Counted from the first letter of the stretch, positions 14,530 to 41,611 are shown. The stretch: 64,000 nt of DNA from Diplonema japonicum (GCA_964019335.1 OZ025697.1:62001-126000); one strand, 5' to 3'. Numbers and translations: made by a program. Notes: a model not told the origin generated them from the sequence alone.

Positions 14530-17293
14530 TTAACATACATTTCTCTTTACGGCCCAATCATCCTCATCCTCCATCTCGGGGTCAACAAGGATGCAGCTCT
14601 TGATCACCAAGCAGATAAGAAGTGCGCCAGCCAGAAGGATGAGGCCCACCCACCAGAAGTCCCAAGCATCGTCGAAGAGGGGAGCGCACACGAAGGCGAA
14701 CCTAGTCATCAGCTTGATCAGAATGTTAAGGGCAGGCCCAGAGGTGTCCTTGAACGGGTCACCCACAGTGTCACCGCACACGGCCGCCTTGTGGCAGTCG
14801 GTACCCTTGCCCTGAACCTCACCGTCAATCGAGAACCCACCAGCCTCAATCCACTTCTTGGCGTTGTCCCAAGCACCACCAGTGTTGCTCATCATCACAC
14901 CAAGGAGGTACCCAGAGGAGATGGCCCCCATGAGGAGACCCACAAGGCAGTGGGACCCGAAGAGGAAACCCATCACAAGAGGGGAGAAGATGGCAAGAAC
15001 ACCGGGGAGAAGCATCTCCCTCAGAGACGAGTTGCAGCTGATGGTGATGCACCTCTTGTAGTCGGGCTTCTGGGTGGGGTCAGTCAGGATGGCGGGGTTC
15101 TCCTTGAACTGCCTCCTCACCTCGTGCATCATCTCCTGGGCGGCCTTGTTCACGGAAAGCATGGTCATCGCACCGAACACGTACGGGAGGAGGGCACCCA
15201 CAAGGACACCAATCACCACAACAGGGCGGAGAAGGTCGACATCCTCGATACCAGCAACACGGGCGAAGGCGGCAAGGAGGGAGAGGGCGGAGAGAACAGC
15301 ACTCCCGTTGGCGAAACCCTTACCAGTGGCGGCGGTGGTGTTGCCAAGGGCGTCAAGGCCGTCGGTGTAGTCCCTCACCCAGCTGGGGAGCTCAGACATC
15401 TCAGCAATACCACCAGCGTTGTCAGACACAGGACCGTAGGCATCGGTCGACATGGTCACACCAAGGGTGGAGAGCATACCGCACACGGAGATGGCAGTGC
15501 CGTAGAAACCAGCTAAGTAGTAGGCACCGAGAACAGCGGCCACGATGAGGAGAAGGGGAACAACGGTGGAGTACATCCCCATACCGAGACCCTGGATCAC
15601 AACGGGACCAGGCCCGAACTCAGTGGCGCGCCCGATGGACTGGGTGGGCTCCTTTGTGTGGCTGGTGAAGTACTCGGTCACCATCCCGATGAGGATACCA
15701 ACAACAAGACCCACCATGATGGAACCCAGCAGACGGGGACCGGGGTAGGTCTCGTCAAAGGGGATTTCGTTCATGTCATCTAGCGTGTCGCCCTCCTCCT
15801 CGAAGAGGAAGACAGTAAGAAAGATGACGCACACCACAATAAGAACACTCGCAATGATGATGTTGAACCTCATGGCGGCGAGGAGGTCGTCCAGGCTGGG
15901 GGCAGAGCCGTCCGCGTTTGTTGAGACCCTAATGTGCACAGTGCAGACAATGCTGATGGCCAGCCCGATCATCATGATGTAGAAGGGAAGAGCCACACCC
16001 TTCTCACCAAACTCGGAGGCTCCCAGCACGGCGGCGGCAACAACAGCCCCAACGAAGGACTCGAACAGATCGGCACCCATACCAGCAACATCACCCACGT
16101 TGTCACCAACGCAGTCAGCAATGGTGGCGGGGTTCTTGGGGGAGTCCTCACCAAGGTCCTTGTCCACCTTACCACAAAGGTCGGCACCAACATCAGCAGC
16201 CTTCGTGTAGATACCACCACCCACACGGGCGAACAGGGCAACAGCGGAGGAACCGAAACCGAACCCACCAAGGGACTCGGTGTTTCCGAAGATGGCGTAG
16301 CAAAGGGTCAAACCGAAGATACCGCAGGACACAACACCGAGACCCATGCAGGCACCGGTACGGAAGGCCACCTGGAGACCCCTCGACATACCCTCCTCCT
16401 TGGAGGAGTAGCAAGCAGCGGCGGTACGGCAGTTACCCTCAGTGGCAATGTGCATGCCCATGTACCCACAGGCGGCGGAGAGGAAGGCCCCGAACAGGAA
16501 AGACACGGAGGCTGCGGGGACCCAGTCGTTCTCCTGACCGTCGATGGCGATGAAGAGGAAGACCCAGAGGAGGGCGACGAAGGGTGCGAGCCAAGTGTAC
16601 TCCTGGTGGAGGAAGGACATGGCAGCCTCGTGGATTACCTCAGCGGTCTCGTGCATCTCGTCGGTACCACGGGGCTTGGAGATGACGTCTCTCATGTAGA
16701 GGCAGACAGTGGCGAAGCCGAGGAAGGAGACACACATGGCTCCCCAGATTGCGGTGTAGGGGACTCTGTAAGTGCAATTGTCGTTAAGCCTTTCAAGGTC
16801 AGCTGTGTAGCCGGCCCTGAGGGCTCCTCCGGCGATGGTGATGGGGATGCATCTAAAGTCTGTGAAGTGGCTTGTGGCCTGAGTGGTGCCCCAGTGCTGC
16901 CAGTGGCGGGATTTGAGGGCCACCGCTTGTGGGTGGAACTCGTCGTTTCTATCAAAGTCATCCTCGTAATGGGCAATGAAGCAGAGGGCGAAGGCGGCAA
17001 GCGAAAGCACCACAAAGACCGCAGCAAAGATGAGTCCAGTGGGACTCTCCACACCTCCGTTGTGGTCCCACTCTTGTAACTCTTTCACAGGCTGGATATC
17101 TGCAGACCTTTCCTTCTTGTCCTCACTTACTTCGTCAATAGGTTCCATGGAGGCAACCTCAGCTCTGTCAAGTGCCCCAGAATCTTCCGGCTTCGCCTGT
17201 TTATTTAAGAGTTAGTTTTCTTTTTCCCTCTTTTCTTTTTATTAGACAAACCTCCTGATCAGCTCCAGGCTCTTCATCGTGCACAACACCCAT
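14530..17293 (-). CDS. hppA: membrane-integral pyrophosphatase copy 1 (K+-dependent, Na+-PPase-type signature)
   Basis: [73 protein letters not shown]; exon 1 17252..17293 ([14 protein letters not shown]), intron 17197..17251. Confidence 0.95.
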
Positions 17294-18325
17294 TGCTGAT
17301 GGCGACTTTCTTTTTTTCTCCTTTTTTATACTTTTTTTCTTCTCTGTCTATAACCTTTATTGAACCTTTAATTTTTTTTTTAAAAAAAAATTTATTAATA
17401 CTGCGCTCATAGAATAAATAAAAATTCAAATTCAAAAAGAAGAAGAAAATTTCGAAAAAGTAAAAGAAAAAAGAGGGGAGGGGGGAAATGATGCAAAGTG
17501 GGGGAGAGAGGGAGGGGGGGGTATAAATAAAGTTTTATTTTTTCGCTTCCTGTCTTTTGGCTGGGGTTACAATCTGAACCACAGTCATGTCCTCTTATTC
17601 TTTTTCCCCTTTCCCTTAATCGCCAAGGGTGAAGAGGTTTCAAGGGAGTAAACCACTCTAATTTGTCTCAGGTAAAGGAATTTGGGGAATAGGAGGGAAG
17701 CCGTGTGCCCTTGCGCTGCGGGTTGGGTGGGGGAGGAGGTGGCGGAGCAGATGGATGGAGATCTGTGACATTAGCTCTCGATAATTATCTGAAAGTCAAG
17801 AACTAGGCACAATAGGATGCGGGGATTACGATGAAAAAAGAGGAAAGATAAAAGGAATTCATTGTTATGAGGTATAAGTGTTAGCAACAGCAAAAGCGAA
17901 GACGACAAAAGGAAGAGGAAAAAAAAAACGAATTTGCGAGATACGAGCCCACGGGAAATGAGTTTCTGTTTTCACAAAACCTGTAAAACTCGTTAAAAAC
18001 GCAGGGCGGGTGGGGGGGGGGGGGTTGGTAATAGCGAGGGGGGGGGGGGGGGGGGGGGAAGCTGGCGGAGCAAAGAAAAAAAAAGAGGCATGATTATTAT
18101 TTTTTTATTATAAAAACTTCGATGGGGGTAACAATGGGTAAATGTGTCGTCCTATCACTGCAAGCAATGGGGATTCACAAATAAAATATGGGAGGGGACT
18201 AGGCAGAGGGCTCGTACGCAAAGCTCGTCGAGTGCCTTTACCGTAAAGGCGAGGGGTAACACAAGGGGGTAAAACAAAAACAAAAAACAAGGGAAAATAA
18301 AATGGGAAATTCGTATCACAACATT

Positions 18326-21180
18326 CTAGACAACAGTGTCCTTGGGTGCCTCCTCCTTGGTCACCTCAACAAGCTCCTTGTTCTCAGCAACCGGCTCGTC
18401 GTCGTCGTTGTTACTGTCCGCAGCGTTCACGTACACAAGCACCAAGGCAATCAACACCATGGCGACACCTAGGAGGGCAAGACCAATGTACCAGAAGTCC
18501 CAAGCATCGTCGAAGAGGGGAGCGCACACGAAGGCGAACCTAGTCATCAGCTTGATCAGAATGTTAAGGGCAGGCCCAGAGGTGTCCTTGAACGGGTCAC
18601 CCACAGTGTCACCGCACACGGCCGCCTTGTGGCACTCAGTACCCTTGCCCTGAACCTCACCGTCAATCACTAACCCACCAGCCTCAACCCACTTCTTGGC
18701 GTTGTCCCAAGCACCACCAGTGTTGCTCATCTTCACACCAAGGAGGTACCCAGAGGAGATGGCCCCCATGAGGAGACCCACAAGGCAGTGGGATCCGAAG
18801 AGGAAACCCATCACAAGAGGGGAGAAGATGGCAAGAACACCAGGGAGAAGCATCTCCCTCAGAGACGAGTTGCAGCTGATGGTGATGCACCTCTTGTAGT
18901 CGGGCTTCTGGGTGGGGTCAGTCAGGATGGCGGGGTTCGCCTTGAACTGCCTCCTCACCTCGTGCATCATCTCCTGGGCGGCCTTGTTCACGGAAAGCAT
19001 GGTCATCGCACCGAACACGTACGGGAGGAGGGCACCCACAAGGACACCGATCACCACAACAGGGCGGAGAAGGTCGACATCCTCGATACCAGCAACACGG
19101 GCGAAGGCGGCAAGGAGGGAGAGGGCGGAGAGAACAGCACTCCCGTTGGCGAAACCCTTACCAGTGGCGGCGGTGGTGTTGCCAAGGGCGTCAAGGCCGT
19201 CGGTGTAGTCCCTCACCCAGCTGGGGAGCTCAGACATCTCAGCAATACCACCAGCGTTGTCAGACACAGGACCGTAGGCATCGGTCGACATGGTCACACC
19301 AAGGGTGGAGAGCATACCGCACACGGAGATGGCAGTGCCGTAGAAACCGCAGAGGTAGTAGGCACCGAGAACAGCGGCCACGATGAGGAGAAGGGGAACA
19401 ACGGTGGAGTACATCCCCATACCGAGACCCTGGATCACAACGGGACCAGGCCCGAACTCGGTGGCGCGCCCGATGGACTGGGTGGGCTCCTCAGTGTGGC
19501 TGGTGAAGTACTCGGTCACCATCCCGATGAGGACACCAACAACAAGACCGAGGATGATGCACCCGAACAGACGGGGACCGGGGTTCAGCTGGTCCTTGGG
19601 GACGTCGCTCATGTCGTCAATGAGGTCCGCCTCCTGCTCGAAGAAGAAGACGCAAAGGAACAGAACACAGACGGTAATCACAACGGCGGCAACGAGGATG
19701 TTGAACCTCATGGCACCGAGGAGGTCGTCAAGGGTGGGGGCAGAGCCGTCCTCCTTCATCCCGATCCTGATGTGCACAGTGCAGGCAATCGACACAATGA
19801 GACCGATCATCATGATGTAGAAAGGAAGAGCGACACCCTTCTTCCCGAACTCGGAGGCTCCCAGCACGGCGGCGGCAACAACAGCCCCAACGAAGGACTC
19901 GAACAGATCGGCACCCATACCAGCAACATCACCCACGTTGTCACCAACGCAGTCAGCAATGGTGGCGGGGTTCTTGGGGGAGTCCTCACCAAGGTCCTTG
20001 TCCACCTTACCACAAAGGTCGGCACCAACATCAGCAGCCTTCGTGTAGATACCACCACCCACACGGGCGAACAGGGCAACAGCGGAGGAACCGAAACCGA
20101 ACCCACCAAGGGACTCGGTGTTTCCGAAGATGGCGTAGCAAAGGGCCAGACCGAAGATACCGCAGGACACAACACCGAGACCCATGCAGGCACCGGTACG
20201 GAAGGCCACCTGGAGACCCCTCGACATACCCTCCTCCTTGGAGGAGTAGCAAGCAGCAGCGGTACGGCAGTTACCCTGGGTGGCAATGTGCATGCCCATG
20301 TACCCACAGGCGGCGGAGAGGAAGGCCCCGAAAAGGAAGGAGACCGAGGCGGCAGGCTCCCAACCGTTCTCCTGACCGTCGATGGCGATGAAGAGGAAGA
20401 TCCAGAGGAGGGCGACGAAGGGTGCGAGCCAAGTGTACTCCTGGTGGAGGAAGGACATGGCGGCCTCGTGGATCACCTCAGCGGTCTCGTGCATCTCGTC
20501 GGTACCACGGGGCTCAGCCATCACGAGTTTCATGTAGACGCAAACGGTGGCGAGACCGATAAAAGAGCAGGCCATGGCTCCCCAGATCGCGGTGTAGGGA
20601 ACGTGGTAGGTGCAGCGAAGGTCGTATCCGGCGTAGTACTCAGTGAGGTTCCAGCTGGGGTTCTGAGCGAACAACTCGATGACCTCCTGGGGAGCAGTCC
20701 CGTTCTGAGTCCAAGCGAAGCAGGTGCTCTTGGCGTAAGGGTTAGCAACGTTGGCGGTGGGGATGGCAGGGAAGAAAAGGGGACCAGTGGGGTTGAACTG
20801 CGAGGTGAACACCTGCCAGTGACGGGAAGTGAGGGCGGTGGACTGGGGGTGGAACTTGTCATCCCTGTCGAAGTGGTCGTAGTACTCAGCCATGAAGCAG
20901 AGGCACAACGAGCAGATGGCGAAGAGAACGAAAACAACGGCGAGAATACCAGCGAGCTTGTTGTCCTCACCGGGGTTAGCGTCGTAAGGCTGGAGAACCT
21001 TGGGGGGTCCCTCGTCTTTGCTCTGCGAGGCATCAGCAGACTCAGGTACCACGCTGGCAGCCGCAGCATCATCAGTGGTCATGTCCGCATCCGCAGGGGA
21101 CTGTAGTATTTGTTCATCGTAAAAATTATTCGTCATACCTGCGGGGTCTCGGCGTCGATAGGCTCGTTAGCAACACCCAT
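18326..21180 (-). CDS. hppA: membrane-integral pyrophosphatase copy 2
   Basis: Same motifs; exon 1 21139..21180 ([14 protein letters not shown]), intron 21101..21138. Confidence 0.95.
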
Positions 21181-22276: not shown

Positions 22277-25200
22277 TCACGCCTCTGCCTCCACCTCAGC
22301 CTTGGGCTCCTGGGACTTGGCATCGTTCTCCTCCTCCTCCTCAGGCTTGCTCGCGTGAGCAACGAACATAACCACAGCACCCACAAGGACCATGGCGACA
22401 CCCAGGAGGATGAGACCAATGTACCAGAAGTCCCAAGCATCGTCGAAGAGGGGAGCGCACACGAAGGCGAACCTAGTCATCAGCTTGATCAGAATGTTAA
22501 GGGCAGGCCCAGAGGTGTCCTTGAACGGGTCACCCACAGTGTCACCGCACACGGCCGCCTTGTGGCAGTCGGTACCCTTGCCCTGAACCTCACCGTCAAT
22601 CGAGAACCCACCAGCCTCAATCCACTTCTTGGCGTTGTCCCAAGCACCACCAGTGTTGCTCATTTCCACACCAAGGAGGTACCCAGAGGAGATGGCCCCC
22701 ATGAGGAGACCCACAAGGCAGTGGGACCCGAAGAGGAAACCCATCACAAGAGGGGAGAAGATGGCAAGAACACCAGGGAGAAGCATCTCCCTCAGAGACG
22801 AGTTGCAGCTGATGGTGATGCACCTCTTGTAGTCGGGCTTCTGGGTGGGGTCAGTCAGGATGGCGGGGTTCTCCTTGAACTGCCTCCTCACCTCGTGCAT
22901 CATCTCCTGGGCGGCCTTGTTCACGGAAAGCATAGTCATCGCACCGAACACGTACGGGAGGAGGGCACCCACAAGGACACCGATCACCACGATGGGCCTC
23001 ATCAGGTTCACACTCTCGATACCAGCAACACGGGCGAAGGCGGCAAGGAGGGAGAGGGCGGAGAGGACAGCGCTCCCGTTGGCGAAACCCTTACCAGTGG
23101 CGGCGGTGGTGTTGCCAAGGGCGTCAAGGCCGTCGGTGTAGTCCCTCACCCAGCTGGGGAGCTCAGACATCTCAGCAATACCACCAGCGTTGTCAGACAC
23201 AGGGCCGTAGGCATCGGTCGACATGGTCACACCAAGGGTGGAGAGCATACCGCACACGGAGATGGCAGTGCCGTAGAAACCGCAGAGGTAGTAGGCACCG
23301 AGAACAGCGGCCACGATGAGGAGGAGGGGAACAACGGTGGAGTACATCCCCATACCGAGACCCTGGATCACAACGGGACCAGGCCCGAACTCGGTGGCGC
23401 GCCCGATGGACTGGGTGGGCTCCTCAGTGTGGCTGGTGAAGTACTCGGTGATCATCCCGATGAGCACACCGACAGCAAGACCGAGCACGATGCACCCGAA
23501 CAGACGGGGACCGGGGTTCAGCTGGTCCTTGGGGACGCTGCTCATGTCGTCAATGATGTCCGCCTCCTGCTCGAAGAAGAAGACGCAAAGGAACAGAACA
23601 CAGACGGTAATCACAACGGCGGCAACGAGGATGTTGAACCTCATGGCACCGAGGAGGTCGTCAAGGGTGGGGGCAGAGCCGTCCTCCTTCATCCCGATCT
23701 TGATGTGCACAGTGCAGGCAATCGACACAATGAGACCGATCATCATGATGTAGAAGGGAAGAGCGACACCCTTCTTTCCGAACTCGGAGGCTCCCAGCAC
23801 GGCGGCGGCAACAACAGCCCCAACGAAGGACTCGAACAGATCGGCACCCATACCAGCAACGTCACCCACGTTGTCACCAACGCAGTCAGCAATAGTGGCG
23901 GGGTTCTTGGGGGAGTCCTCACCAAGGTCCTTGTCCACCTTACCACAAAGGTCGGCACCAACATCAGCAGCCTTCGTGTAGATACCACCACCCACACGGG
24001 CGAACAGGGCAACAGCGGAGGAACCGAAACCGAACCCACCAAGGGACTCGGTGTTTCCGAAGATGGCGTAGCAAAGGGTCAAACCGAAGATACCGCAGGA
24101 CACAACACCGAGACCCATGCAGGCACCGGTACGGAAGGCCACCTGGAGACCCCTCGACATACCCTCCTCCTTGGAGGAGTAGCAAGCAGCGGCGGTACGG
24201 CAGTTACCCTCAGTGGCAATGTGCATGCCCATGTACCCACAGGCGGCGGAGAGGAAGGCCCCGAAAAGGAAGGAGACCGAGGCGGCAGGCTCCCAACCGT
24301 TCTCCTGACCGTCGATGGCGATGAAGAGGAAGATCCAGAGGAGGGCGACGAAGGGTGCGAGCCAAGTGTACTCCTGGTGGAGGAAGGACATGGCGGCCTC
24401 GTGGATCACCTCAGCGGTCTCGTGCATCTCGTCGGTACCACGGGGCTCAGCCATCACCATGCGCATGTAGAAGCAGACGGTGGCGAGACCGATAAAAGAG
24501 CAGGCCATGGCTCCCCAGATCGCGGTGTAGGGAACGTGGTAGGTGCAGCGAAGGTCGTATCCGGCGTAGTACTCGCTGGCGTTCATGTTGTACAAGGTAG
24601 CGAGGGTAGTCACAACCGCCGGGTTGGCTGCGCCGTTCAGGGTCCAGTCGAAGCAGCTGGTCTTGGCGTAAGGGTTGGTCGCGTTGTTCATCTCCACAGG
24701 GACGGCAGCGGGGGCAGTCGAGTTGTCGATGATGGCGTCGGGCTGGATGGTGGGCCAGTAGATGGGACCAGTGGGGTTGAACTGCGAGGTGAACACCTGC
24801 CAGTGACGACCCTTCAGAGCCGTCGCCTGGGGGTGGAACTTGTCATCCCTGTCGAAGTCCTCGGTGTACTCCGCAACGAAGCACAGGGCGAGGGCACCGC
24901 ACGCCATCACGATGAACACGATACCGGCAACGAAGGCCATCGGCGAGTCCACACCGGGGTTCTTGTCCCAAGGCTGCATCCCACCCTCCTCCTCCTCCTC
25001 AACGGCGGCAGGGGTCTCCTCCTCCACGGCAGCCGGCTTCTCTTCCTCTACCGCAGCAGGGGTCTCCTCAACAGGCTGCTCCTGTAATTATTTGTAAAAA
25101 GGTGCAAAAACAAAGAAATCATTTCCCGCGTGACGACAAAAGAAGCCTCTCGCCCCAAATATTTTATTGCAGACTATTCGGGAAAAAAAAAGGATTGTCT

Positions 25201-25785
25201 CGATTTTAGTGGTGTCATCCGGTATGTGACACAGCGGCCACCCTTGTGATTCACCCCGAAGCCTCCCAAGTCAACTGTGGTCCCGTAGAAAGGGACACAG
25301 AAGAAACTAGACGACAATTGGAAAGTATGTTGTGGTATGCTCGCTGGCACAAGGCCACGGAGAGGTTTCTCGTCAAAACACCTCCTTGTTCGATGTAATG
25401 GGATAAGGGACTCTGTTGAGTCTACCCCGTCCAGATTTCCCCACATGTACGGCTCGAGAGTTCCCTTTCGCTTGAGGTTCCCTCCAAACCAAGGTTACCA
25501 GGAACCACAGGGAGGGTAGTATATTGGCCACCAAAAAATGAGAATGTAGCTCTGAGCCCAAATTTTCGCTATATTGTACAAACTGCGTGAAAACCATGTG
25601 CATCACTGTTGGTAGGTCGCAGCATGCGTTGTCCTGCCAGCATGTTGCACTTGAGATGGGCAACGAAAATATGCGAAAATATCATGCAAAGGTCCCCTAT
25701 CGATACTGGATAAGTATCCCTCCCCTTTCCTCTTCTTCCATACCTGAGGGACCTGCTCTTCGATCGGTTCATTGCTCGATGGCAT
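22277..25785 (-). CDS. hppA: membrane-integral pyrophosphatase copy 3
   Basis: Same motifs; exon 1 25744..25785 ([14 protein letters not shown]), long intron 25082..25743. Confidence 0.93.
24998..25072 (-). repeat. three imperfect 24-nt coding repeats ([10 protein letters not shown]) in the mPPase copy 3 N-terminal tail; the same repeat lies at about 29643-29717 in copy 4
   Basis: Translation [28 protein letters not shown]. Confidence 0.75.
25082..25743 (-). other. 662-nt first intron of mPPase copy 3 (paralogous introns are 37-55 nt)
   Basis: GTATGG donor after a 42-nt exon homologous to copy 4 exon 1; TTACAG acceptor followed by the same EQPVEE sequence as in copy 4. Confidence 0.8.
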
Positions 25786-26933: not shown

Positions 26934-29819
26934 TCACGCCTCGGGCTCATCCGCGGACTTAGTGTCGTTCTTCTCCTCCTCCTCCTCAGGCTTGCTTGCG
27001 TGAGCAACGAACATAACCACAGCACCCACAAGGACCATGGCGACACCCAGGAGGATGAGACCAATGTACCAGAAGTCCCAAGCATCGTCGAAGAGGGGAG
27101 CGCACACGAAGGCGAACCTAGTCATCAGCTTGATCAGAATGTTAAGGGCAGGCCCAGAGGTGTCCTTGAACGGGTCACCCACAGTGTCACCGCACACGGC
27201 CGCCTTGTGGCAGTCGGTACCCTTGCCCTGAACCTCACCGTCAATCGAGAACCCACCAGCCTCAATCCACTTCTTGGCGTTGTCCCAAGCACCACCAGTG
27301 TTGCTCATTTCCACACCAAGGAGGTACCCAGAGGAGATGGCCCCCATGAGGAGACCCACAAGGCAGTGGGACCCGAAGAGGAAACCCATCACAAGAGGGG
27401 AGAAGATGGCAAGAACACCAGGGAGAAGCATCTCCCTCAGAGACGAGTTGCAGCTGATGGTGATGCACCTCTTGTAGTCGGGCTTCTGGGTGGGGTCAGT
27501 CAGGATGGCGGGGTTCTCCTTGAACTGCCTCCTCACCTCGTGCATCATCTCCTGGGCGGCCTTGTTCACGGAAAGCATAGTCATCGCACCGAACACGTAC
27601 GGGAGGAGGGCACCCACAAGGACACCGATCACCACGATGGGCCTCATCAGGTTCACACTCTCGATACCAGCAACACGGGCGAAGGCGGCAAGGAGGGAGA
27701 GGGCGGAGAGGACAGCGCTCCCGTTGGCGAAACCCTTACCAGTGGCGGCGGTGGTGTTGCCAAGGGCGTCAAGGCCGTCGGTGTAGTCCCTCACCCAGCT
27801 GGGGAGCTCAGACATCTCAGCAATACCACCAGCGTTGTCAGACACAGGGCCGTAGGCATCGGTCGACATGGTCACACCAAGGGTGGAGAGCATACCGCAC
27901 ACGGAGATGGCAGTGCCGTAGAAACCGCAGAGGTAGTAGGCACCGAGAACAGCGGCCACGATGAGGAGGAGGGGAACAACGGTGGAGTACATCCCCATAC
28001 CGAGACCCTGGATCACAACGGGACCAGGCCCGAACTCGGTGGCGCGCCCGATGGACTGGGTGGGCTCCTCAGTGTGGCTGGTGAAGTACTCGGTGATCAT
28101 CCCGATGAGCACACCGACAGCAAGACCGAGCACGATGCACCCGAACAGACGGGGACCGGGGTTCAGCTGGTCCTTGGGGACGCTGCTCATGTCGTCAATG
28201 ATGTCCGCCTCCTGCTCGAAGAAGAAGACGCAAAGGAACAGAACACAGACGGTAATCACAACGGCGGCAACGAGGATGTTGAACCTCATGGCACCGAGGA
28301 GGTCGTCAAGGGTGGGGGCAGAGCCGTCCTCCTTCATCCCGATCTTGATGTGCACAGTGCAGGCAATCGACACAATGAGACCGATCATCATGATGTAGAA
28401 GGGAAGAGCGACACCCTTCTTTCCGAACTCGGAGGCTCCCAGCACGGCGGCGGCAACAACAGCCCCAACGAAGGACTCGAACAGATCGGCACCCATACCA
28501 GCAACGTCACCCACGTTGTCACCAACGCAGTCAGCAATAGTGGCGGGGTTCTTGGGGGAGTCCTCACCAAGGTCCTTGTCCACCTTACCACAAAGGTCGG
28601 CACCAACATCAGCAGCCTTCGTGTAGATACCACCACCCACACGGGCGAACAGGGCAACAGCGGAGGAACCGAAACCGAACCCACCAAGGGACTCGGTGTT
28701 TCCGAAGATGGCGTAGCAAAGGGTCAAACCGAAGATACCGCAGGACACAACACCGAGACCCATGCAGGCACCGGTACGGAAGGCCACCTGGAGACCCCTC
28801 GACATACCCTCCTCCTTGGAGGAGTAGCAAGCAGCGGCGGTACGGCAGTTACCCTCAGTGGCAATGTGCATGCCCATGTACCCACAGGCGGCGGAGAGGA
28901 AGGCCCCGAAAAGGAAGGAGACCGAGGCGGCAGGCTCCCAACCGTTCTCCTGACCGTCGATGGCGATGAAGAGGAAGATCCAGAGGAGGGCGACGAAGGG
29001 TGCGAGCCAAGTGTACTCCTGGTGGAGGAAGGACATGGCGGCCTCGTGGATCACCTCAGCGGTCTCGTGCATCTCGTCGGTACCACGGGGCTCAGCCATC
29101 ACCATGCGCATGTAGAAGCAGACGGTGGCGAGACCGATAAAAGAGCAGGCCATGGCTCCCCAGATCGCGGTGTAGGGAACGTGGTAGGTGCAGCGAAGGT
29201 CGTATCCGGCGTAGTACTCGCTGGCGTTCATGTTGTACAAGGTAGCGAGGGTAGTCACAACCGCCGGGTTGGCTGCGCCGTTCAGGGTCCAGTCGAAGCA
29301 GCTGGTCTTGGCGTAAGGGTTGGTCGCGTTGTTCATCTCCACAGGGACGGCAGCGGGGGCAGTCGAGTTGTCGATGATGGCGTCGGGCTGGATGGTGGGC
29401 CAGTAGATGGGACCAGTGGGGTTGAACTGCGAGGTGAACACCTGCCAGTGACGACCCTTCAGAGCCGTCGCCTGGGGGTGGAACTTGTCATCCCTGTCGA
29501 AGTCCTCGGTGTACTCCGCAACGAAGCACAGGGCGAGGGCACCGCACGCCATCACGATGAACACGATACCGGCAACGAAGGCCATCGGCGAGTCCACACC
29601 GGGGTTCTTGTCCCAAGGCTGCATCCCACCCTCCTCCTCCTCCTCAACGGCGGCAGGGGTCTCCTCCTCCACGGCAGCCGGCTTCTCTTCCTCTACCGCA
29701 GCAGGGGTCTCCTCAACAGGCTGCTCCTATTTGGTGTTGAGGTTTTCTTTGTTGCGAGAAATGTTGTTTTCACATACCTGAGCAGCCGGTTCTTCAATTG
29801 GTTCATTGCTTGATGGCAT
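26934..29819 (-). CDS. hppA: membrane-integral pyrophosphatase copy 4 (exon 2 nearly identical to copy 3)
   Basis: Same motifs; exon 1 29778..29819 ([14 protein letters not shown]), intron 29727..29777. Confidence 0.95.
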
Positions 29820-30593: not shown

Positions 30594-33435
30594 TTACTCT
30601 TCAGCGGCCACCTCTTCGGGGGCCACCTCAGCCTCCTCAGTCTTAGGAAGTTCATTGTTCTCCTCCTGCTCAGGCTTGCTTGCCTGAGCAACGAAGTACA
30701 GCACTCCCGCAACGAGCACAAGAGCAGCGGCCAGGAGGGCAAGACCAATGTACCAGAAGTCCCAAGCATCGTCGAAGAGGGGAGCGCACACGAAGGCGAA
30801 CCTAGTCATCAGCTTGATCAGAATGTTAAGGGCAGGCCCAGAGGTGTCCTTGAACGGGTCACCCACAGTGTCACCGCACACGGCCGCCTTGTGGCAGTCG
30901 GTACCCTTGCCCTGAACCTCACCGTCAATCACGAACGACCCAGCCTCAATCCACTTCTTGGCGTTGTCCCAAGCACCACCAGTGTTGCTCATCTTCACAC
31001 CAAGGAGGTACCCAGAGGAGATGGCCCCCATGAGGAGACCCACAAGGCAGTGGGATCCGAAGAGGAAACCCATCACAAGAGGGGAGAAGATGGCAAGAAC
31101 ACCAGGGAGAAGCATCTCCCTCAGAGACGAGTTGCAGCTGATGGTGATGCACCTCTTGTAGTCGGGCTTCTGGGTGGGGTCAGTCAGGATGGCGGGGTTC
31201 GCCTTGAACTGCCTCCTCACCTCGTGCATCATCTCCTGGGCGGCCTTGTTCACGGAAAGCATAGTCATCGCACCGAACACGTACGGGAGGAGGGCACCCA
31301 CAAGGACACCAATCACCACAACAGGCCTCATCAAGTCAACGCTGTCAATACCGGCAACACGGGCGAAGGCGGCAAGGAGGGAGAGGGCGGAGAGGACAGC
31401 GCTCCCGTTGGCGAAACCCTTACCAGTGGCGGCGGTGGTGTTGCCAAGGGCGTCAAGGCCGTCAGTCAGGTCCCTCACCCAGCTGGGGAGCTCAGACATC
31501 TCAGCAATACCACCAGCGTTGTCAGACACAGGGCCGTAGGCATCGGTCGACATGGTCACACCAAGGGTGGAGAGCATACCGCACACGGAGATGGCAGTGC
31601 CGTAGAAACCGCAGAGGTAGTAGGCACCGAGAACAGCGGCCACGATGAGGAGAAGGGGAACAACGGTGGAGTACATCCCCATACCGAGACCCTGGATCAC
31701 AACGGGACCAGGCCCGAACTCAGTGGCGCGCCCGATGGACTGGGTGGGCTCCTCAGTGTGGCTGGTGAAGTACTCAGTCACCATCCCGATGAGGACACCA
31801 ACAACAAGACCGAGCACGATGCACCCGAACAGACGGGGACCAGGGTTCAGCTGGTCCTTGGGGACGTTGCTCATGTCGTCAATGATGTCCGCCTCCTGCT
31901 CGAAGAAGAAGACGCAAAGGAACAGAACACAGACGGTGATACCGCAGGCAGCAACGATGATGTTGAACCTCATGGCGGCGAGGAGGTCGTCCAGGCTGGC
32001 GGGGGTGCCGTCCTCGTTCTGCTTGACCCTGATCTGCACGGTACACAAGATGGACACGAAAAGACCGATCATCATGATGTAGAAGGGAAGAGCCACACCC
32101 TTCTTCCCGAACTCGGAGGCTCCCAGCACGGCGGCGGCAACAACAGCCCCAACGAAGGACTCGAACAGATCGGCACCCATACCAGCAACGTCACCCACGT
32201 TGTCACCAACGCAGTCAGCAATGGTGGCGGGGTTCTTGGGGGAGTCCTCACCAAGGTCCTTGTCCACCTTACCACAAAGGTCGGCACCAACGTCAGCAGC
32301 CTTCGTGTAGATACCACCACCCACACGGGCGAACAGGGCAACAGCGGAGGAACCGAAACCGAACCCACCAAGGGACTCGGTGTTTCCGAAGATGGCGTAG
32401 CAAAGGGACAGACCGAAGATACCGCAGGACACAACACCGAGACCCATGCAGGCACCGGTACGGAAGGCCACCTGGAGACCCCTCGACATACCCTCAGTCT
32501 CGGAGGAGTAGCAAGCAGCGGCGGTACGGCAGTTACCCTGGGTGGCAATGTGCATGCCCATGTACCCACAGGCGGCGGAGAGGAAGGCCCCGAAAAGGAA
32601 GGACACGGAGGAAGCGGGGACCCAGTCGTTCTCCTGACCGTCGATGGCGACGTAGAGGAAGACCCAGAGGAGGGCGACGAAGGGTGCGAGCCAAGTGTAC
32701 TCCTGGTGGAGGAAGGACATGGCGGCCTCGTGGATCACCTCAGCGGTCTCGTGCATCTCGTCGGTACCACGGGGCTCAGCCATCACCATGCGCATGTAAA
32801 GGCAGACGGTAGCGAGACCGATGAAGGCGACGGCCATGGCTCCCCAGATCGCGGTGTAGGGAACGTGGTACTTGCAAGAGAAGTCGAAACCGGCGTAGTA
32901 CTCGGTGATGTTCCACGTGGGGTTGGCGGCGAAGATGGCAACGACCTCAGCAGGCGGTGTGTTGTTGACCGTGTACGAGATGCAGGTGCTCTTGGCGTAG
33001 GGGTTGGGGGTCAGGTCAGGGTAAAGAAGGCGGCCAACCGGGTTGAACTGGGACTCGAAGCGCTGCCAGTGACGGGAAGTGAGGGCGGTGGACTGGGGGT
33101 TGAACTCATCGTCCCTGTCGAAGTCCTCATAGTACTCAGCCATGAAGCAGAGCACAAGAGCACACGCAGCGAAGATCAGGAAAACACCAGCAGCGATAGT
33201 TGCAAGGGGCGAGTCCACACCAGGGTGCTTGTCGAAGGGCTGAAGCTCCCTCTCCACTGCCTCTTCTCCAGCGGCTTCAGCGCCAGCCTCAGCGTCAGCC
33301 CGTGGCTCAGATGACTCATCCTGAGTCTTCTGCTCAACCTGAGCCTCCTGTGAGTAGTTAAAATCAAATAAAAAAGAATGTTGGCATGTATACCTGGCCC
33401 GACTGCTCATCGATTGGTTCGTTTGCGACACCCAT
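30594..33435 (-). CDS. hppA: membrane-integral pyrophosphatase copy 5
   Basis: Same motifs; exon 1 33394..33435 ([14 protein letters not shown]), intron 33348..33393. Confidence 0.95.
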
Positions 33436-35098
33436 GTTGTCAAGTATTGATAACTGTATGGGGGGGGGGGGGGGGGGCTTGTAAAGAAAAAAAGGCAGGG
33501 TTGCACAAGAGGTTTGGTAAGGAAAAAAAAAAGAAAAATGGACACAAGAAAATGAAAAAAGAAAAACAAAGTGAAGATGGAAGTAAAGAATGAATAAAAA
33601 AGGGGGGGGGGGAAGTTTCACAAGGAAAACACAAAAAAGAAAGCGGGAGGGGATATTGCCCGGGGGGACCAAATGAAAACGAAGGAGTTTGGCGCCAGGA
33701 TGGGGAGGGGCGGAAAAAAAAAGGGGGGCGGGGAAGGAACCACACGAAGAAAACAAAGCAATGTAAGAAAAATAATGGAGGGGAAAAAAAAAAAGAGAGA
33801 GGGGGAAAAAAAGAGAAAAAAAGAGGAAGAAAAAGGGAAGAATGTAGCTTCGAAACTTTTAGAGGAAGAAGGATCAACTTCTTGACTTGCTTCCGTTTAG
33901 ATTCACCGTTTTCCTTATTTTTCTTTTTCTTCCGTTTTCGTTCCTCTTTTCTTTTCTTTTTTATCTTCTTTTTTTTTTTGCCCACCTCTTACCTGCTCTC
34001 TCTACGGTAGGGGAAGAAAAAAAAAAGAAATACAATATAAAAAAAAAAAGAAAGAAAACAGGCTACACAGAACGGGGATAATAAGCGGGCATGTAAGCTA
34101 CTAGGCAACTAGAAGGAAAAAGAGTACTGATACTTGCAGTCCACTTCCTTTCCTCCTGACCCCTCTCTTCCTTGGCACCTTTTGTGGAAAAAAAACAAGG
34201 GGGGGGACCAAGACACACTTTCGGGGGTGGGGAAACAATACAAAAATCTTTTTTTTTTTTTCGTAGTTCATACAATGGCAGTGGTGTGAGGGTAAAATCC
34301 TTTTTGTGGGGGCGTGGACGGAGGCAGAGCCGCCACTTTTATTTTTCTTCCCCCTTCTTTCTTCAAAGTTTTTTTTTTTTTTTTTTTTTTTCCTTCCTAC
34401 TTCACTACTGCCACACGAACCTTCCGTTACCATTTTTTTTTTTTTTTTCCATTCTCTCTTCACTCTTACTCAATTCCCGATACTCTTCTTTTTTTTTTTT
34501 TCCCCGTCGTTTCATCAAATCTCTTTTGAATTCTTATTCTTTCTAAAAAAAAAAAAAGGAGATGGGGTAAAAATAAAACAGGGGGAAGGAGGATCATGGG
34601 GATCAAGTCATTTTTTTTTGTCAAAAATTTCCCTCCAAATTTTCAAAAAGACCTTTCGAAAACTAGAGTAATATGGGGCTAGAAGCTGTGCTTCCAGCAT
34701 ATTGCTGTTGGTGTGGGTTGGATCAAAAGAAAAAAAAGGGGGGAAGTGGAAACCAAACAAAAAAAAAGGGGGGGCCGGGGATGGGTGCAGGGGAAGGCTG
34801 GGAGGTAGGGAAGGCTGATGGGAGCGAAAAGAAGAAGAGAAAAAAGAAAAAAAAAAAACACAATCTCTAGTTTTTTTTTTTTATTATTATTTTCTTGAGC
34901 AAAACTGTACGGAGGCGAGGTTTATTTTTTTTTTTTTTTTTTTTGGGACTCTCTTTTTTTTTTTTTCGTTTTCTGAACATTTTCATTTTTTTTTAAATTC
35001 AAATGCTATACTTTTCACAATTTCTCAGTCACGGGCTGACTGATCCTGTTGATTATGTACTTTATTCCCCCCTTCCCCCCTTGCACACCTCACTCTGC

Positions 35099-37937
35099 CT
35101 ACTCGTCCTTCTCCTTCGCATCCACTTCTTCATCTTCATCATCAGTCATGCTCATCTTGTCAACATACATCACCACAAGCACGACCAAAACAACAGCAAC
35201 AGAGAGGAGGATGAGACCAATGTACCAGAAGTCCCAAGCATCGTCGAAGAGGGGAGCGCACACGAAGGCGAACCTAGTCATCAGCTTGATCAGAATGTTA
35301 AGGGCAGGCCCAGAGGTGTCCTTGAACGGGTCACCCACAGTGTCACCGCACACGGCCGCCTTGTGGCAGTCGGTACCCTTGCCCTGAATCTCGTCGCCAA
35401 TCACGAACGACCCAGCCTCAATCCACTTCTTGGCGTTGTCCCAAGCACCACCAGTGTTGCTCATCATCACACCAAGGAGGTACCCAGAGGAGATGGCACC
35501 AATAAGGAGACCCACAAGGCAGTGGGACCCGAAGAGGAAACCCATCACAAGAGGGGAGAAGATGGCAAGAACACCGGGGAGAAGCATCTCCCTCAGAGAC
35601 GAGTTGCAGCTGATGGTGATGCACCTCTTGTAGTCGGGCTTCTGGGTGGGGTCAGTCAGGATGGCGGGGTTCGCCTTGAACTGCCTCCTCACCTCGTGCA
35701 TCATCTCCTGGGCGGCCTTGTTCACGGAAAGCATGGTCATCGCACCGAACACGTACGGGAGGAGGGCACCCACAAGGACACCGATCACCACAACAGGGCG
35801 GAGAAGGTCGACATCCTCGATACCAGCAACACGGGCGAAGGCGGCAAGGAGGGAGAGGGCGGAGAGAACAGCACTCCCGTTGGCGAAACCCTTACCAGTG
35901 GCGGCGGTGGTGTTGCCAAGGGCGTCAAGGCCGTCGGTGTAGTCCCTCACCCAGCTGGGGAGCTCAGACATCTCAGCAATACCACCAGCGTTGTCAGACA
36001 CAGGACCGTAGGCATCGGTCGACATGGTCACACCAAGGGTGGAGAGCATACCGCACACGGAGATGGCAGTGCCGTAGAAACCGCAGAGGTAGTAGGCACC
36101 GAGAACAGCGGCCACGATGAGGAGAAGGGGAACAACGGTGGAGTACATCCCCATACCGAGACCCTGGATCACAACGGGACCAGGCCCGAACTCGGTGGCG
36201 CGCCCGATGGACTGGGTGGGCTCCTCAGTGTGGCTGGTGAAGTACTCGGTCACCATCCCGATGAGCACACCAACAACAAGACCCACCACGATGCACCCGA
36301 ACAGACGGGCACCAGGGTTCATCTGGTCCTTGGAGACACCCGAGGGAAGGTCATCAAGGAAGTGGCGCTCGTACTCGAAAAAGAAAATGCACAGCATCAG
36401 TGCACAGGCAGTGATCACAACGGCGGCAACGATGATGTTGAACCTCATGGCCTCCAGCAGGTCGTCCAGGCTGGCGGGGGAGCCATCAGGGTTCTTCTCA
36501 ACCCTAACGTAGACGGTGCAGGCAATCGACACAATGAGACCGATCATCATGATGTAGAAGGGAAGAGCGACACCCTTCTTCCCGAACTCGGAGGCTCCCA
36601 GCACGGCGGCGGCAACAACAGCCCCAACGAAGGACTCGAACAGATCGGCACCCATACCAGCAACATCACCCACGTTGTCACCAACGCAGTCAGCAATGGT
36701 GGCGGGGTTCTTGGGGGAGTCCTCACCAAGGTCCTTGTCCACCTTACCACAAAGGTCGGCACCAACGTCAGCAGCCTTCGTGTAGATACCACCACCCACA
36801 CGGGCGAACAGGGCAACAGCGGAGGAACCGAAACCGAACCCACCAAGGGACTCGGTGTTTCCGAAGATGGCGTAGCAAAGGGTCAAACCGAAGATACCGC
36901 AGGACACAACACCGAGACCCATGCAGGCACCGGTACGGAAGGCCACCTGGAGACCCCTCGACATACCCTCCTCCTTGGAGGAGTAGCAAGCAGCAGCGGT
37001 ACGGCAGTTACCTTCAGTGGCAATGTGCATGCCCATGTACCCACACCCAGCGGAGAGGAAGGCCCCGAAAAGGAAGGACACGGAGGAAGCGGGGACCCAG
37101 TCGTTCTCCTGACCGTCGATGGCGACGTAGAGGAAGATCCAGAGGAGGGCGACGAAGGGTGCGAGCCAAGTGTACTCCTGGTGGAGGAAGGACATGGCGG
37201 CCTCGTGGATCACCTCAGCGGTCTCGTGCATCTCGTCGGTACCACGGGGCTCAGCCATCACGAGCTTCATGTTGATGCAGACAGCGGCGAGACCGACAAA
37301 GGAGCAGGCCATGGCTCCCCAGATTGCGGTGTAGGGAACGTGGTACTTGCAGGAAAGGTCGTATCCGTTGTAGTACTGTTCGGGGGTCATGTTGGCGGCG
37401 GTGCATGCGGCAACGACCTCAGGGCGGGGGAAGTTCACATCGGTGGTGTAGTCGATGCAGGTGTACCCAGCGTGGGGGTTGGCAACGAGGGGCGCGTTTT
37501 GGTTTGTGCCAAGAGCGCGGGGGTAGAACAGAGGACCTGCAGAGTTGAACTGCTTCGTGTAGGAGGTCCAGTGACGGGAGGTAAGGGCGATGGACTGGGG
37601 GTTGAACTCATCGTCCCTGTCGAAGTGGTCGTAGTACTCAGCCATGAAGCAGAGCACTAGAGCACAGGCAGCGAACAGAATGAACACCGCTGCTCCAATC
37701 ATAGGGAGGGGTTCGTTGGTTCCTGGGTTATGGTCGTACTTTTGCCTCACAACCTCCTCTTCTTCTTCTTTCTTTTCGGCCTCAACAGCAGAAGCACCTG
37801 CTCCCGTCAACGTCCTCGTGGCCTCCTCCGCATCTGCGTCCGCCTGCTGCTGCTCCTCCTGTGAAATAAATTTGTGAAAAAAATAAGTCGCATACAGTTG
37901 GAGGATCTTCATCAATTGGCTCATGAGCAACACCCAT
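35099..37937 (-). CDS. hppA: membrane-integral pyrophosphatase copy 6
   Basis: Same motifs; exon 1 37896..37937 ([14 protein letters not shown]), intron 37859..37895. Confidence 0.95.
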
Positions 37938-38644
37938 TTTAAATCAGGTACTTGATAACTGTGTTAACTTAAAACTTCTTTGTAAACAATGCACAGCGGA
38001 AGAAGTAATATAAAAAAGGGTAAAAAAAAAAAGGGGGTCATTAAGGGGAAGTGGGTAAATGGTGACTTTTTTCTTGGGGCGGGCGGGAAGGGTGTGTTCA
38101 TTATATATTGTTTTAGGTGTAAAAGATAAAAAAAAGGGGGAGGACCACAGCACAAGGAGTATTGAGAAGAAGCCCCCAAGAGTGTTGGGGGGGGGGGGGG
38201 GGGGGGGGTGAGTATAACAATATAGTGAGAAGGCGCGGAAGGCAATGCAGCCAGAAGCCAGCTCCACGAACGTACGGGCCGACGCATTTCCGGAAATCGG
38301 GGGGAGGGGGACGAAGGAATACAGTGCGTCATGCCTGGGTACGAAGAAAGGAGAAAACAAAAGTGAGGCATTTTCCTCCTACATTTGCTTTCGAAGTTAA
38401 AAAAAAAGGGGGAGAGAGGGAGGTAATAATTGTGTAAATATCAGGGGTGGGGGCAGGGTCAAAAAGAAAAAAACAGCAACTAGAACGTGCATATTGTACA
38501 TTAAGTAAAAAAAAAAAAAGAAAAAAAAAGAAGGGATTATTTCGGAAAAAGAAAATAGAGGGGGGGATAAAGGATGGGGGAGAAATAGTTATAGATAGCT
38601 AATATACAATGTTAAAAGAAATAAGATAGAAGCAAAGGACATGC

Positions 38645-41263
38645 CTACTCTTCGATAGGTTCGTTCGGCTTAGGGTCTTCTATCGTTTCAGCCACAGGGG
38701 CGTCGTCACTCTCACTCCCCGCAGAAGTGAATGCAATGACTGCACCTGCAATAATGAGGGAACCCGCCAGGAGGATGAGGCCCACCCACCAGTAGTCCCA
38801 GCCATCGTCGAAGAGGGGAGCGCACACGAAGGCGAACCTAGTCATCAGCTTGATCAGAATGTTAAGGGCAGGCCCAGAGGTGTCCTTGAACGGGTCACCC
38901 ACAGTGTCACCGCACACGGCCGCCTTGTGGCAGTCGGTACCCTTGCCCTGAACCTCACCGTCAATCGAGAACCCACCAGCCTCAATCCACTTCTTGGCGT
39001 TGTCCCAAGCACCACCAGTGTTGCTCATCATCACACCAAGGAGGTACCCAGAGGAGATGGCCCCCATGAGGAGACCCACAAGGCAGTGGGACCCGAAGAG
39101 GAAACCCATCACAAGAGGGGAGAAGATGGCAAGAACACCGGGGAGAAGCATCTCCCTCAGAGACGAGTTGCAGCTGATGGTGATGCACCTCTTGTAGTCG
39201 GGCTTCTGGGTGGGGTCAGTCAGGATGGCGGGGTTCTCCTTGAACTGCCTCCTCACCTCGTGCATCATCTCCTGGGCGGCCTTGTTCACGGAAAGCATGG
39301 TCATCGCACCGAATACGTACGGGAGGAGGGCACCCACAAGAAGACCGATCACCACAACCGGCTTGAGAAGGTTCACACTCTCGATGTCAGCAACACGGGC
39401 GAAGGCAATAAGAAGAGAAAGGGCGGAGAGGACAGCACTCCCGTTGGCGAAACCCTTACCAGTGGCGGCGGTGGTGTTGCCAAGGGCGTCAAGGCCGTCG
39501 GTGTAGTCCCTCACCCACTCAGGCAGCTCAGACATCTCAGCAATACCACCAGCGTTGTCAGACACAGGGCCGTAGGCATCGGTCGACATGGTCACACCAA
39601 GGGTGGAGAGCATACCAACACATGAGATGGCAGTGCCGTAGAAACCAGCTAAGTAAAAGGCACCGAGAACAGCGGCCACGATGAGGAGAAGGGGAACAAC
39701 GGTGGAGTACATCCCCATACCGAGACCCTGGATCACAACGGGACCAGGCCCGAACTCAGTGGCGCGCCCGATGGACTGGGTGGGCTCCTCAGTGTGGCTG
39801 GTGAAGTACTCGGTCACCATCCCGATGAGGATACCAACAACAAGACCGAGGATGATGCACCCGAACAGCCTTGCACCAGGGTCCTTCTGATCGAAGGAGA
39901 CAGAGTAGCCGGGCGTGCTATCAAGGTCGTCAAGGAAGTCACCCTCCTCCTCGAAGAGGTAAAGGCAGAGAAGGAGGCACGACACCACAATGATACTACC
40001 GGCAATGAGGACATTCAGGCGCATGGCCTTCAGCAAGTCGTCGAGGTCGGGTGTCTTCTCGGTGTTCACCCTGATATGCACAGTGCAGAATACGCTAGTT
40101 ACAAGCCCAATGGCAATGATGTAGAAGGGAAGAGCGACACCCTTCTCACCAAACTCCGTAGCCCCCACGACAGCAGCAGCAACAACAGAACCGACATAAG
40201 ACTCGAACAGATCGGCACCCATACCAGCAACATCACCCACGTTGTCACCAACGCAGTCAGCAATGGTGGCGGGGTTCTTGGGGGAGTCCTCACCAAGGTC
40301 CTTGTCCACCTTACCACAAAGGTCGGCACCAACGTCAGCAGCCTTCGTGTAGATACCACCACCCACACGGGCGAACAGGGCAACAGCGGAGGAACCGAAA
40401 CCGAACCCACCAAGGGACTCGGTGTTTCCGAAGATGGCGTAGCAAAGGGACAGACCGAATGCACCGCAGGACACAACACCAATGCCCATGCAGGCACCGG
40501 TACGGAAGGCCACCTGGAGACCTCGTGAGATACCGGCCTCTCTTGAGGAGTAGCAAGCAGCAGCGGTACGGCAGTTACCTTCAGTGGCAATGTGCATGCC
40601 CATGTACCCACACCCAGCGGAGAGGAAGGCCCCGAAAAGGAAGGACACGGAGGCTGCGGGGACCCAGTCGTTCTCCTGACCGTCGATGGCGATGAAGAGG
40701 AAGATCCAGAGGAGGGCGACGAAGGGTGCGAGCCAAGTGTACTCCTGGTGGAGGAAGGACATGGCGGAATCATGAATTATCTCAGCAGTCTCGTGCATCT
40801 CGTCGGTACCACGGGGCTTGGAGAGGACATCGCGGGCGTAGAGGAAGACAGCAGCAAAGCCAAAGAAGGATGTGCACATGGTAGTCCAGATTGCGGTGTA
40901 GGGGACTTTGTAGGTGCAAGGGCCGATCTGGAGGGCGGCAGAGCGGTCGATGGTGCCGTCGTTGGGCCTGTCGCGGACTATCGTAGCGTTAATGCACATA
41001 GGCTCCGAGAAGGCATAAAGCCATTGCCTGAAATGCCTGTTTTCCAGTGCCGTCCACTGCGGGTTGAACTCGTCGTTCCTGTCAAAGTCGTTCTTCTCAT
41101 TCGCCACAAAGATCAACGCGAAGGCAGCACACATGAACACCAAGCTTACCGCAGCCCCGACAAGCGTCCCGGGTCCAGGCGGTTCCAAATGCCCATCAGC
41201 ACCATTTCCCTCACCCTCAGTCAGCTCCACAGGCTTCTCATCTGTCTTGACCTCTTCAGACAT
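38645..41263 (-). CDS. hppA: membrane-integral pyrophosphatase copy 7 (most divergent, apparently intronless)
   Basis: Same motifs (DLFESYVG); start [10 protein letters not shown] at 41263; the upstream part of the tracked ORF is homopolymer spacer. Confidence 0.93.
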
Positions 41264-41611
41264 GTCTCCACGTTTAGTAGCGCGTGTAAATTTAACAAAA
41301 AGAATTTCCTGGAACGAAAATGGTACCAATGGTGGCAGAAGCGAAAAATGATATTTTGAACAAAAAAAAGGGGGGGTGGGGGCGGATATTAAAAAGAAAT
41401 AAATAATTGAATACGGGTAAATATAATAGGGAATATGGGGAGGTGTAAAAAAAAAGGGGGGGGAGGGACCACGCATATGCTTAGGAGTGTATGCCCGGAG
41501 AAAAAAGAAAAGGGGAGGGAGAAAGGAGAAGTTAAAAAAAAGGGGGGTATATAGGAATAGTATACATTAAAAAATAAAAAAAAAGGAGAGAGGACAAAGG
41601 ATCCCTCTCCC

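Follow-up and report, generated by a model that had tools for sequence, protein, structure and literature searches.

The stretch of DNA considered here, 64,000 nucleotides of the Diplonema japonicum assembly (GCA_964019335.1 OZ025697.1:62001-126000; below, the window), carries seven genes for membrane pyrophosphatases (mPPases), which an earlier note made from the sequence alone had read as a candidate sodium pump system driven by pyrophosphate (PPi). Positions 14530-41263 hold seven long open reading frames (ORFs), all on the minus strand and arranged head-to-tail with a spacing of 3.5-4.7 kb (14530-17148, 18326-21136, 22277-25027, 26934-29672, 30594-33569, 35099-37933 and 38645-41476); the lower limit set by that note, 14530, falls at the copy 1 stop codon and the upper one, 41263, at the copy 7 ATG. 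Every copy gives one full-length match to PF03030 (H_PPase), at 790-795 bits and across profile positions 2-644 of 645. The catalytic motifs (hydrolytic centre; helices 5, 6, 11, 12, 15 and 16) are present in all seven, and their columns are invariant in two alignments.

Copies 1 to 6 share a simple structure, in which a 42-nt exon 1 is followed by a GT..AG intron and then by a long exon that continues in phase (sequence reading and script); the introns measure, in order, 55, 38, 662, 51, 46 and 37 nt. In copy 1, exon 2 occupies 14530-17196 (888 codons plus stop; PF03030 794 bits; frame and junction checked), while the intron (17197-17251) and exon 1 (17252-17293) were placed by script on the pattern of copy 6. 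Copy 2 (18326-21180) has exon 2 at 18326-21100, the intron at 21101-21138 and exon 1 at 21139-21180. The long intron belongs to copy 3 (22277-25785), where it separates exon 2 (22277-25081) from exon 1 (25744-25785) at 25082-25743. Copy 4 (26934-29819) is made up of exon 2 at 26934-29726, an intron at 29727-29777 and exon 1 at 29778-29819, and copy 5 (30594-33435) of exon 2 at 30594-33347, an intron at 33348-33393 and exon 1 at 33394-33435. For copy 6 (35099-37937), exon 2 is at 35099-37858, the intron at 37859-37895 and exon 1 at 37896-37937. Copy 7 (38645-41263), the most divergent, appears to be a single coding exon starting from the ATG at 41263; a mini-exon was looked for upstream of it and none was found. 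The 14-codon exon 1 is conserved (MGVxxEPID.. or MPSSNEPIE..), and similar protein starts are seen in D. ambulator and Rhynchopus humris. Gly2 is frequent in this peptide, in a context poor for N-myristoylation. All searches, fold models and alignments described below used the exon 2 product alone, exons 1 and 2 never having been joined.

The array genes are transcribed. EukProt transcripts of D. japonicum (EP01064; P0001-P0003 and P0015) match copy 6 and a paralogue on another contig (C113), the latter being identical to P0015 over all columns kept for the tree. P0001-P0003 start with exon 1 joined exactly to exon 2 of copy 6, which confirms this splice junction, and one contig assembled from the reads of run X2 ends its match at 37857, beside the predicted acceptor of the same copy. 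In two runs guessed to be RNA the coding bodies are covered and the spacers little, although the contigs are fragmented and cross-joined between paralogues and so give weak support for transcription. The view in the earlier note of an amplified eukaryotic gene is thus borne out by seven tandem copies that are spliced (copy 6 transcripts) and expressed, and its description of them as intron-bearing is right for copies 1-6.

The residues on which the sodium reading was based are present throughout. Translation and a regular-expression survey recover GNTTAA (A12.46, G12.49) and the helix-6 motif GADLFES(F/Y)VG (E6.53, G6.57) in seven of seven copies, the helix-6 motif of copy 7 differing from that of copies 1-6. 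The survey reads S5.43, E6.53, S6.54, G6.57, A12.46, G12.49 and N16.46 in every copy, and its numbering was checked on a Flavobacterium-type control from Puia, for which E5.43 was recovered. When aligned by HMMER to the H+-PPase of Vigna radiata (4A01), the window protein has its helix-6 stretch opposite GMGSDLFGSYAESSCAA of Vigna, so that DLFESFVG is paired with DLFGSYAE; the window protein has E6.53 and G6.57, Vigna Gly at 6.53 and Glu at 6.57. K+ dependence is determined by residues 12.46 and 12.49 (PMC11486809, PMC10897367), and all copies carry the K+-dependent combination of Ala 12.46 with Gly or Ala at 12.49 (GNTTAAxGKG), not the Lys 12.46 and Thr 12.49 of K+-independent, AVP2-type enzymes. 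Nor do they have the Glu 6.57 of AVP1/VP1 (DxFGSxAE) or the Glu at 5.43 of the Flavobacterium johnsoniae type, these positions being Gly 6.57 (with Glu 6.53) and S5.43 in every copy. The Na+-site ligands D6.50, E6.53, S6.54 and D/N16.46 under K16.50 are supplied by GADLFES and ALNILIK in all copies, with Asn at 16.46. The gate signature as a whole is identical between the window copies and a homologue from Phocaeicola (L090), and is found in 243 of 375 surveyed sequences. The comparison motifs cited in the earlier note also hold in our data set (DLFGSxAE in the E6.57 clade, GNTTKA with E6.53 in K+-independent representatives, LLESFVG in the Thermotoga-like representative), and its core reading, that these mPPases are of the K+-dependent type and place the Glu as Na+-transporting enzymes do, agrees with the A12.46 and E6.53 seen in each copy. 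As a discriminator of the ion, Asp versus Asn at 16.46 was considered and rejected, since Asn is also the rule among the sampled E6.53 bacterial enzymes.

The AlphaFold2 model of the copy 1 exon 2 product (predicted local distance difference test, pLDDT, 88; predicted template modelling score, pTM, 0.90) has the 16-helix mPPase fold, with target-normalised Foldseek TM-scores of 0.85-0.90 to the Thermotoga, Vigna and Pyrobaculum structures. Foldseek was set aside as a guide to Na+ versus H+ type, since it scores the Thermotoga and Vigna structures alike. In the model an N-terminal helix (residues 53-77) and a loop of ~70 residues with two conserved Cys precede the 16-helix core, and a further helix (845-869) follows it. 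The predicted topology therefore has 18 helices, 16 in the core and one extra at each end. Both termini of the Vigna H+-PPase are lumenal, and since the window proteins add a helix at either end, both of their tails should be cytosolic. Divergence between the copies is concentrated outside the core, with identities of 88-100% in the core, 35-69% in the N-terminal extension and 26-62% in the C-terminal tail; the core of copy 7 is 88-90% identical to those of the other copies. The proteins of copies 3 and 4 show no difference in either the N-terminal extension or the core, and in the C-terminal tail their identity is 93%; their introns are 662 and 51 nt long, which means that an intron insertion or deletion followed a very recent duplication. 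A near-identical core combined with variable tails and first lumenal loop suggests high dosage together with differing targeting or regulation.

The trees drew on the window copies, 120 word-based database matches, at least 80 named bacterial and archaeal loci (mostly metagenome-assembled genomes, with no characterised species among the matches listed) and Spirochaetota loci including one E6.57 enzyme, with which a further 146 new family-wide representatives, plus four already in the set, were found; these span the E6.57, E5.43 and K+-independent types. The H+-PPase of Carboxydothermus hydrogenoformans and the sequences of Ostreococcus and Bathycoccus are not part of the tree. FastTree (n = 375) and IQ-TREE (n = 107; LG+C20+F+G4 with posterior mean site frequencies) agree on nested clades around the window proteins, and support is given as ultrafast bootstrap/SH-aLRT. 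In the IQ-TREE analysis the diplonemids form a clade (100/100) that is sister to Rhodelphis plus red algae (100/100). Both are enclosed in a clade of 45 rows (99/92) whose named members are all eukaryotes, among them also Mantoniella, Cylindrotheca, Chattonella and Elphidium, several rows being unnamed metatranscriptome proteins. The cluster look-ups that supplied these names brought up no assayed bacterial enzyme. One unnamed member (P0160) has Gly at both 6.53 and 6.57 and thus no gate Glu at either usual position. The eukaryote clade is sister to sequences of Caldilineaceae and Methyloglobulus (99/96), nests with them within Chloroflexota (100/98), and the resulting Chloroflexota-plus-eukaryote clade stands beside the clade of the Phocaeicola homologue (100/97). 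The window proteins are therefore nested among E6.53, K+-dependent-type bacterial lineages (in the IQ-TREE analysis, with assayed enzymes represented by proxy), and lie outside the Phocaeicola-homologue clade, in its sister lineage. The E6.57 clade is separate (100/100) and holds a representative that matches 4A01 at 764 bits, the Spirochaetota E6.57 enzyme and a protein from the diplonemid Lacrimia lanifica. Branching within VP1/AVP1, which the earlier note had named as the outcome that would overturn its proposal, is not what the trees show; when the E6.53 eukaryotes were forced together with the E6.57 clade, the likelihood was 65 lnL units worse and the arrangement was rejected by the approximately unbiased (AU) test (p-AU 0.011). 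Most members of the eukaryote E6.53 clade have an extra hydrophobic helix after helix 16, exceptions being the Mantoniella sub-clade and a few others; the helix is absent from the Chloroflexota sisters and the E6.57 clade. The ~100 added N-terminal residues are shared by diplonemids and the red-algal line.

Searching the 62.5-Mb assembly in all six frames for mPPase genes gave the array itself, one further (eighth) enzyme of its type on C113, two degenerate ORFs and one K+-independent-type gene. No AVP1/VP1-type (E6.57) gene was found in the assembly, where the L. lanifica protein used as query (P0131) returned only E6.53 copies at 42-47% identity; this search for a separate VP1-type gene had been proposed in the earlier note. 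P0131 itself (EukProt EP01063) is an E6.57, AVP1-type mPPase. Judged by these sequences, diplonemids would differ in the K+-dependent mPPase types they have kept, unless P0131 is a contaminant. The sole K+-independent-type gene (C26:590532-592832; L009/L011/L012/L015) has GNVTKA and ADVFES and is broken into four or more pieces, with TGA codons separating the frames, which points to several introns; the array genes are by contrast near-intronless. Beside the eighth paralogue lies an intact minus-strand ORF of 1069 aa (L010:1309-4518, in the region C113:195238-197274; PF03030 373 bits), in which DNVGDNVGD has become AGQNLSSVIG and GNTTAA has become GIAATS, and whose N-terminal ~300 residues are Q/G/P-rich. 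From these replacements it looks like a pseudo-enzyme; a search for orthologues of it found none, the best matches being active enzymes at no more than 37% identity. The other degenerate ORF (L013:751-2853, in the region C50:382917-384221), of 700 aa and more degenerate (PF03030 68 bits, catalytic Asp motifs lost), lies on the array's own contig and on the same strand, ~280 kb from the array. Multi-exon matches to TIGR01106 (type IIC, Na,K/H,K-like P-type ATPase), possibly duplicated, occur at C35:102237-109042 and 174661-183926; the matches to TIGR01523 and TIGR01106 came exon by exon, each below the whole-protein cut-off. As to the surroundings of the array, every long ORF in positions 1-43000 of the window is on the minus strand, the spacers are poly-pyrimidine/poly-C-rich on the coding strand, and the AT skew changes sign twice, at about 13-14 kb and at about 43 kb, so that the stretch looks like the one-directional gene clusters of kinetoplastids. 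Most of the ORFs flanking the array are without a Pfam match.

The reading that we favor is that the seven active genes encode K+-dependent, E6.53-type PPi-driven pumps whose ion is most likely Na+, perhaps with H+, and we put its probability at roughly 0.5; for Na+ transport as such, whether alone or with H+, the odds appear even or very slightly better. Each protein would be a complete PPi-hydrolysing cation pump that splits PPi on the cytosolic side of the membrane and transports a monovalent cation from the cytosol, either to an organelle or through the plasma membrane. Its gate, with D6.50, E6.53, S6.54 and N16.46 under K16.50, would form the arrangement that binds Na+ in the Thermotoga mPPase. 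Because of this gate, and because of the nesting among E6.53 K+-dependent-type lineages that include the proxies of Na+ enzymes, the most likely ion at the Na+ levels of the cell would be Na+. The helix-5 model of Strauss et al. points the same way, in that K+-dependent enzymes hold helix 5 'in' and E6.53 turns away from S5.43, creating a Na+ site (PMC10897367). The variable acidic tails, both facing the cytosol in the predicted topology, may serve isoform-specific sorting or regulation. The names of NCBIfam models were rejected as a guide to the ion, all 13 mPPase models being called 'sodium-translocating', including the best match of the K+-independent-type gene on C26; the window proteins pass only the cut-offs of the generic NF001960 and of TIGR01104 V_PPase.

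Several points weigh against Na+, and ion specificity is not something that can be read from sequence. Selectivity across subclasses is not predicted by any pattern of residues (PMC10897367), and returning the Glu from position 6.57 to 6.53 does not produce a Na+ pump (PMC6882861). The Na+-pumping pyrophosphatases that have been assayed are all bacterial or archaeal, with none from the eukaryote E6.53 clade, and reviews call Na+ transport prokaryotic (PMC11593465, PMC9408878). In our tree proxies stood in for the characterised enzymes, namely the Phocaeicola homologue, a representative that matches 4AV3 at 656 bits and another that matches 4A01 at 764 bits. The splice junctions of the five intron-bearing copies other than copy 6 are likewise placed by analogy with it. 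The type IIC-like ATPase exons on C35 mean that a PPi-driven Na+ pump is not required by need. The remaining points (the H+-only enzyme of C. hydrogenoformans, the residue at 16.46 and the AVP1-type gene that the assembly does not show) bear directly on the strongest alternative.

This alternative, which we consider a serious one although somewhat short of an even chance, is that the window proteins are K+-dependent pumps of H+ only that keep E6.53 and acidify acidocalcisome- or lysosome-like compartments in lieu of an AVP1-type enzyme. Such a combination is documented, the H+-only pump of C. hydrogenoformans being K+-dependent with E6.53 and A12.46 (PMC6882861 Table 1), and K+-independent H+ pumps also use E6.53 (PMC10897367). 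With no E6.57 gene found in the 62.5-Mb assembly, though L. lanifica has one, the E6.53 enzymes may have taken over proton pumping at acidocalcisome-like organelles; the K+-independent and presumably H+-pumping mPPase on contig C26 speaks against this reading. Asn at 16.46 is common to the window proteins and Vigna, where Thermotoga has Asp, but it is also the rule in the E6.53 bacterial enzymes, including the Phocaeicola homologue. The window proteins score slightly better against Vigna (505 bits) than against Thermotoga (473 bits), whereas in the trees they stand apart from the E6.57 H+ clade (AU p = 0.011) and are nested among bacterial lineages of the E6.53 K+-dependent type whose assayed representatives, according to the classification in the literature, transport Na+. 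The helix-5 model, too, predicts a Na+ site for enzymes of this kind.

Dual Na+,H+ co-transport of the kind known from Bacteroides vulgatus overlaps with the favored reading, which allows H+ along with Na+, and as an explanation in its own right it appears improbable. The gate signature is identical to that of the Phocaeicola homologue, whose clade is the immediate sister of the Chloroflexota-plus-eukaryote clade, but the window proteins fall outside the Phocaeicola-homologue clade itself.

The origin of the genes is older than the diplonemids. The E6.53 clade is common to red algae, Rhodelphis, a prasinophyte (Mantoniella), a diatom (Cylindrotheca), a raphidophyte (Chattonella), a foraminifer (Elphidium) and every sampled diplonemid, with orthologues in eight diplonemid species other than D. 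japonicum, from six genera and including D. ambulator, D. papillatum, Rhynchopus euleeides, R. humris, Flectonema, Namystynia and Hemistasia. As the family is shared across eukaryotes, its bacterial (Chloroflexota-like) origin predates the diplonemids, and bacterial ancestry is a property of the whole eukaryote clade rather than of diplonemids. The earlier suggestion of horizontal acquisition is accordingly not supported in the form of a transfer specific to Diplonema. A recent transfer from a bacterium to diplonemids, or bacterial contamination of the assembly, can be dismissed as extremely improbable: the closest prokaryotic relatives among the matches listed are ~50% identical (Caldilineaceae and other Chloroflexota) and the automatic names have a bacterial style, but the introns are GT..AG at a conserved position with the copy 6 splice seen in transcripts, orthologues exist in those eight other species, the nearest relatives are eukaryotic, and the extra C-terminal helix occurs in most of the eukaryote clade and in no bacterial sister.

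We tentatively propose, at somewhat less than even odds, that the eukaryote-wide E6.53 clade is a true family of primary PPi-driven Na+ pumps and that Diplonema, having lost the AVP1-type enzyme, exports Na+ at several membranes through the isoforms of its seven-gene array, which vary in their cytosolic tails. In most members such a family would be marked by the added C-terminal helix, to which diplonemids and the red-algal line would add the N-terminal helix and lumenal loop. If true, no Na+-PPase system would have been shown in a eukaryote before this one. Diplonemids are among the most diverse marine heterotrophs. Should the clade pump Na+, marine protists of several supergroups, diplonemids included, would have a cheap, ATP-independent way to a low cytosolic Na+, and PPi would have a direct role in salt balance. 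Should it pump H+ instead, it would provide a second, independent E6.53 K+-dependent proton pump and sharpen the question of what sets ion selectivity. In either case the Diplonema array offers ready candidates for testing, as intact, transcribed genes with simple gene models, and the related D. papillatum can be transformed.

Among the known systems, the Na+-PPase of Thermotoga maritima (4AV3, 5LZQ) shares A12.46, E6.53, D6.50, S6.54 and K16.50 with the window proteins, as well as the 16-helix fold (Foldseek TM-score 0.86-0.90) at ~38% identity. It differs in having Asp where they have N16.46 and LES where they have FES, and the window proteins add helices at both ends and the lumenal loop of ~70 residues; the Thermotoga-like representative is also far from them in the tree, in the other main K+-dependent branch. 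The plant AVP1/Vigna H+-PPases and protist VP1 (4A01) are similar in A12.46, G12.49, N16.46, fold and eukaryotic host. Unlike the window proteins, they have the Glu at 6.57 and no extra terminal helices, and they form the separate E6.57 clade with which joining was rejected. The H+-PPase of C. hydrogenoformans is alike in E6.53 and K+ dependence and unlike in pumping H+ only. The Bacteroides (Phocaeicola) vulgatus Na+,H+-PPase subfamily is close through its homologue L090, which has the identical seven-residue gate signature and a sister clade, yet the window proteins are not members of that clade.

The nearest precedents are eukaryotic. The D. papillatum orthologue is 72% identical overall and shares both the motifs and the N-terminal extension; its name in NCBI, 'sodium pump', is automatic and carries no evidence on the ion. 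Mantoniella, which we take to belong to the same algal class as Ostreococcus and Bathycoccus, has a sequence in the same 45-row clade as the window proteins. Its sub-clade differs in having neither the extra C-terminal helix nor the long N-terminal extension, whereas the diplonemid genes form a seven-copy tandem array. Probable Na+-PPase orthologues have been reported from marine prasinophytes (Ostreococcus, Bathycoccus) and await validation; like the window proteins they are eukaryotic and marine, and they cluster with bacterial Na+-PPases, their function being putative (Pérez-Castiñeira and Serrano, 2020; PMC7438732). A sodium-type PPase in eukaryotes is therefore not a new idea, the prasinophyte orthologues having been flagged and the D. 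papillatum protein named before. What is new, as far as we have found, is the seven-gene array and the mini-exon conserved in it, the 18-helix topology that we predict and how widely it occurs in the eukaryote clade, the placement of diplonemids as sister to the red-algal line, and an assembly of D. japonicum in which no AVP1-type gene was found. Set beside these systems, the array is a solid and testable set of candidates rather than a new kind of system.

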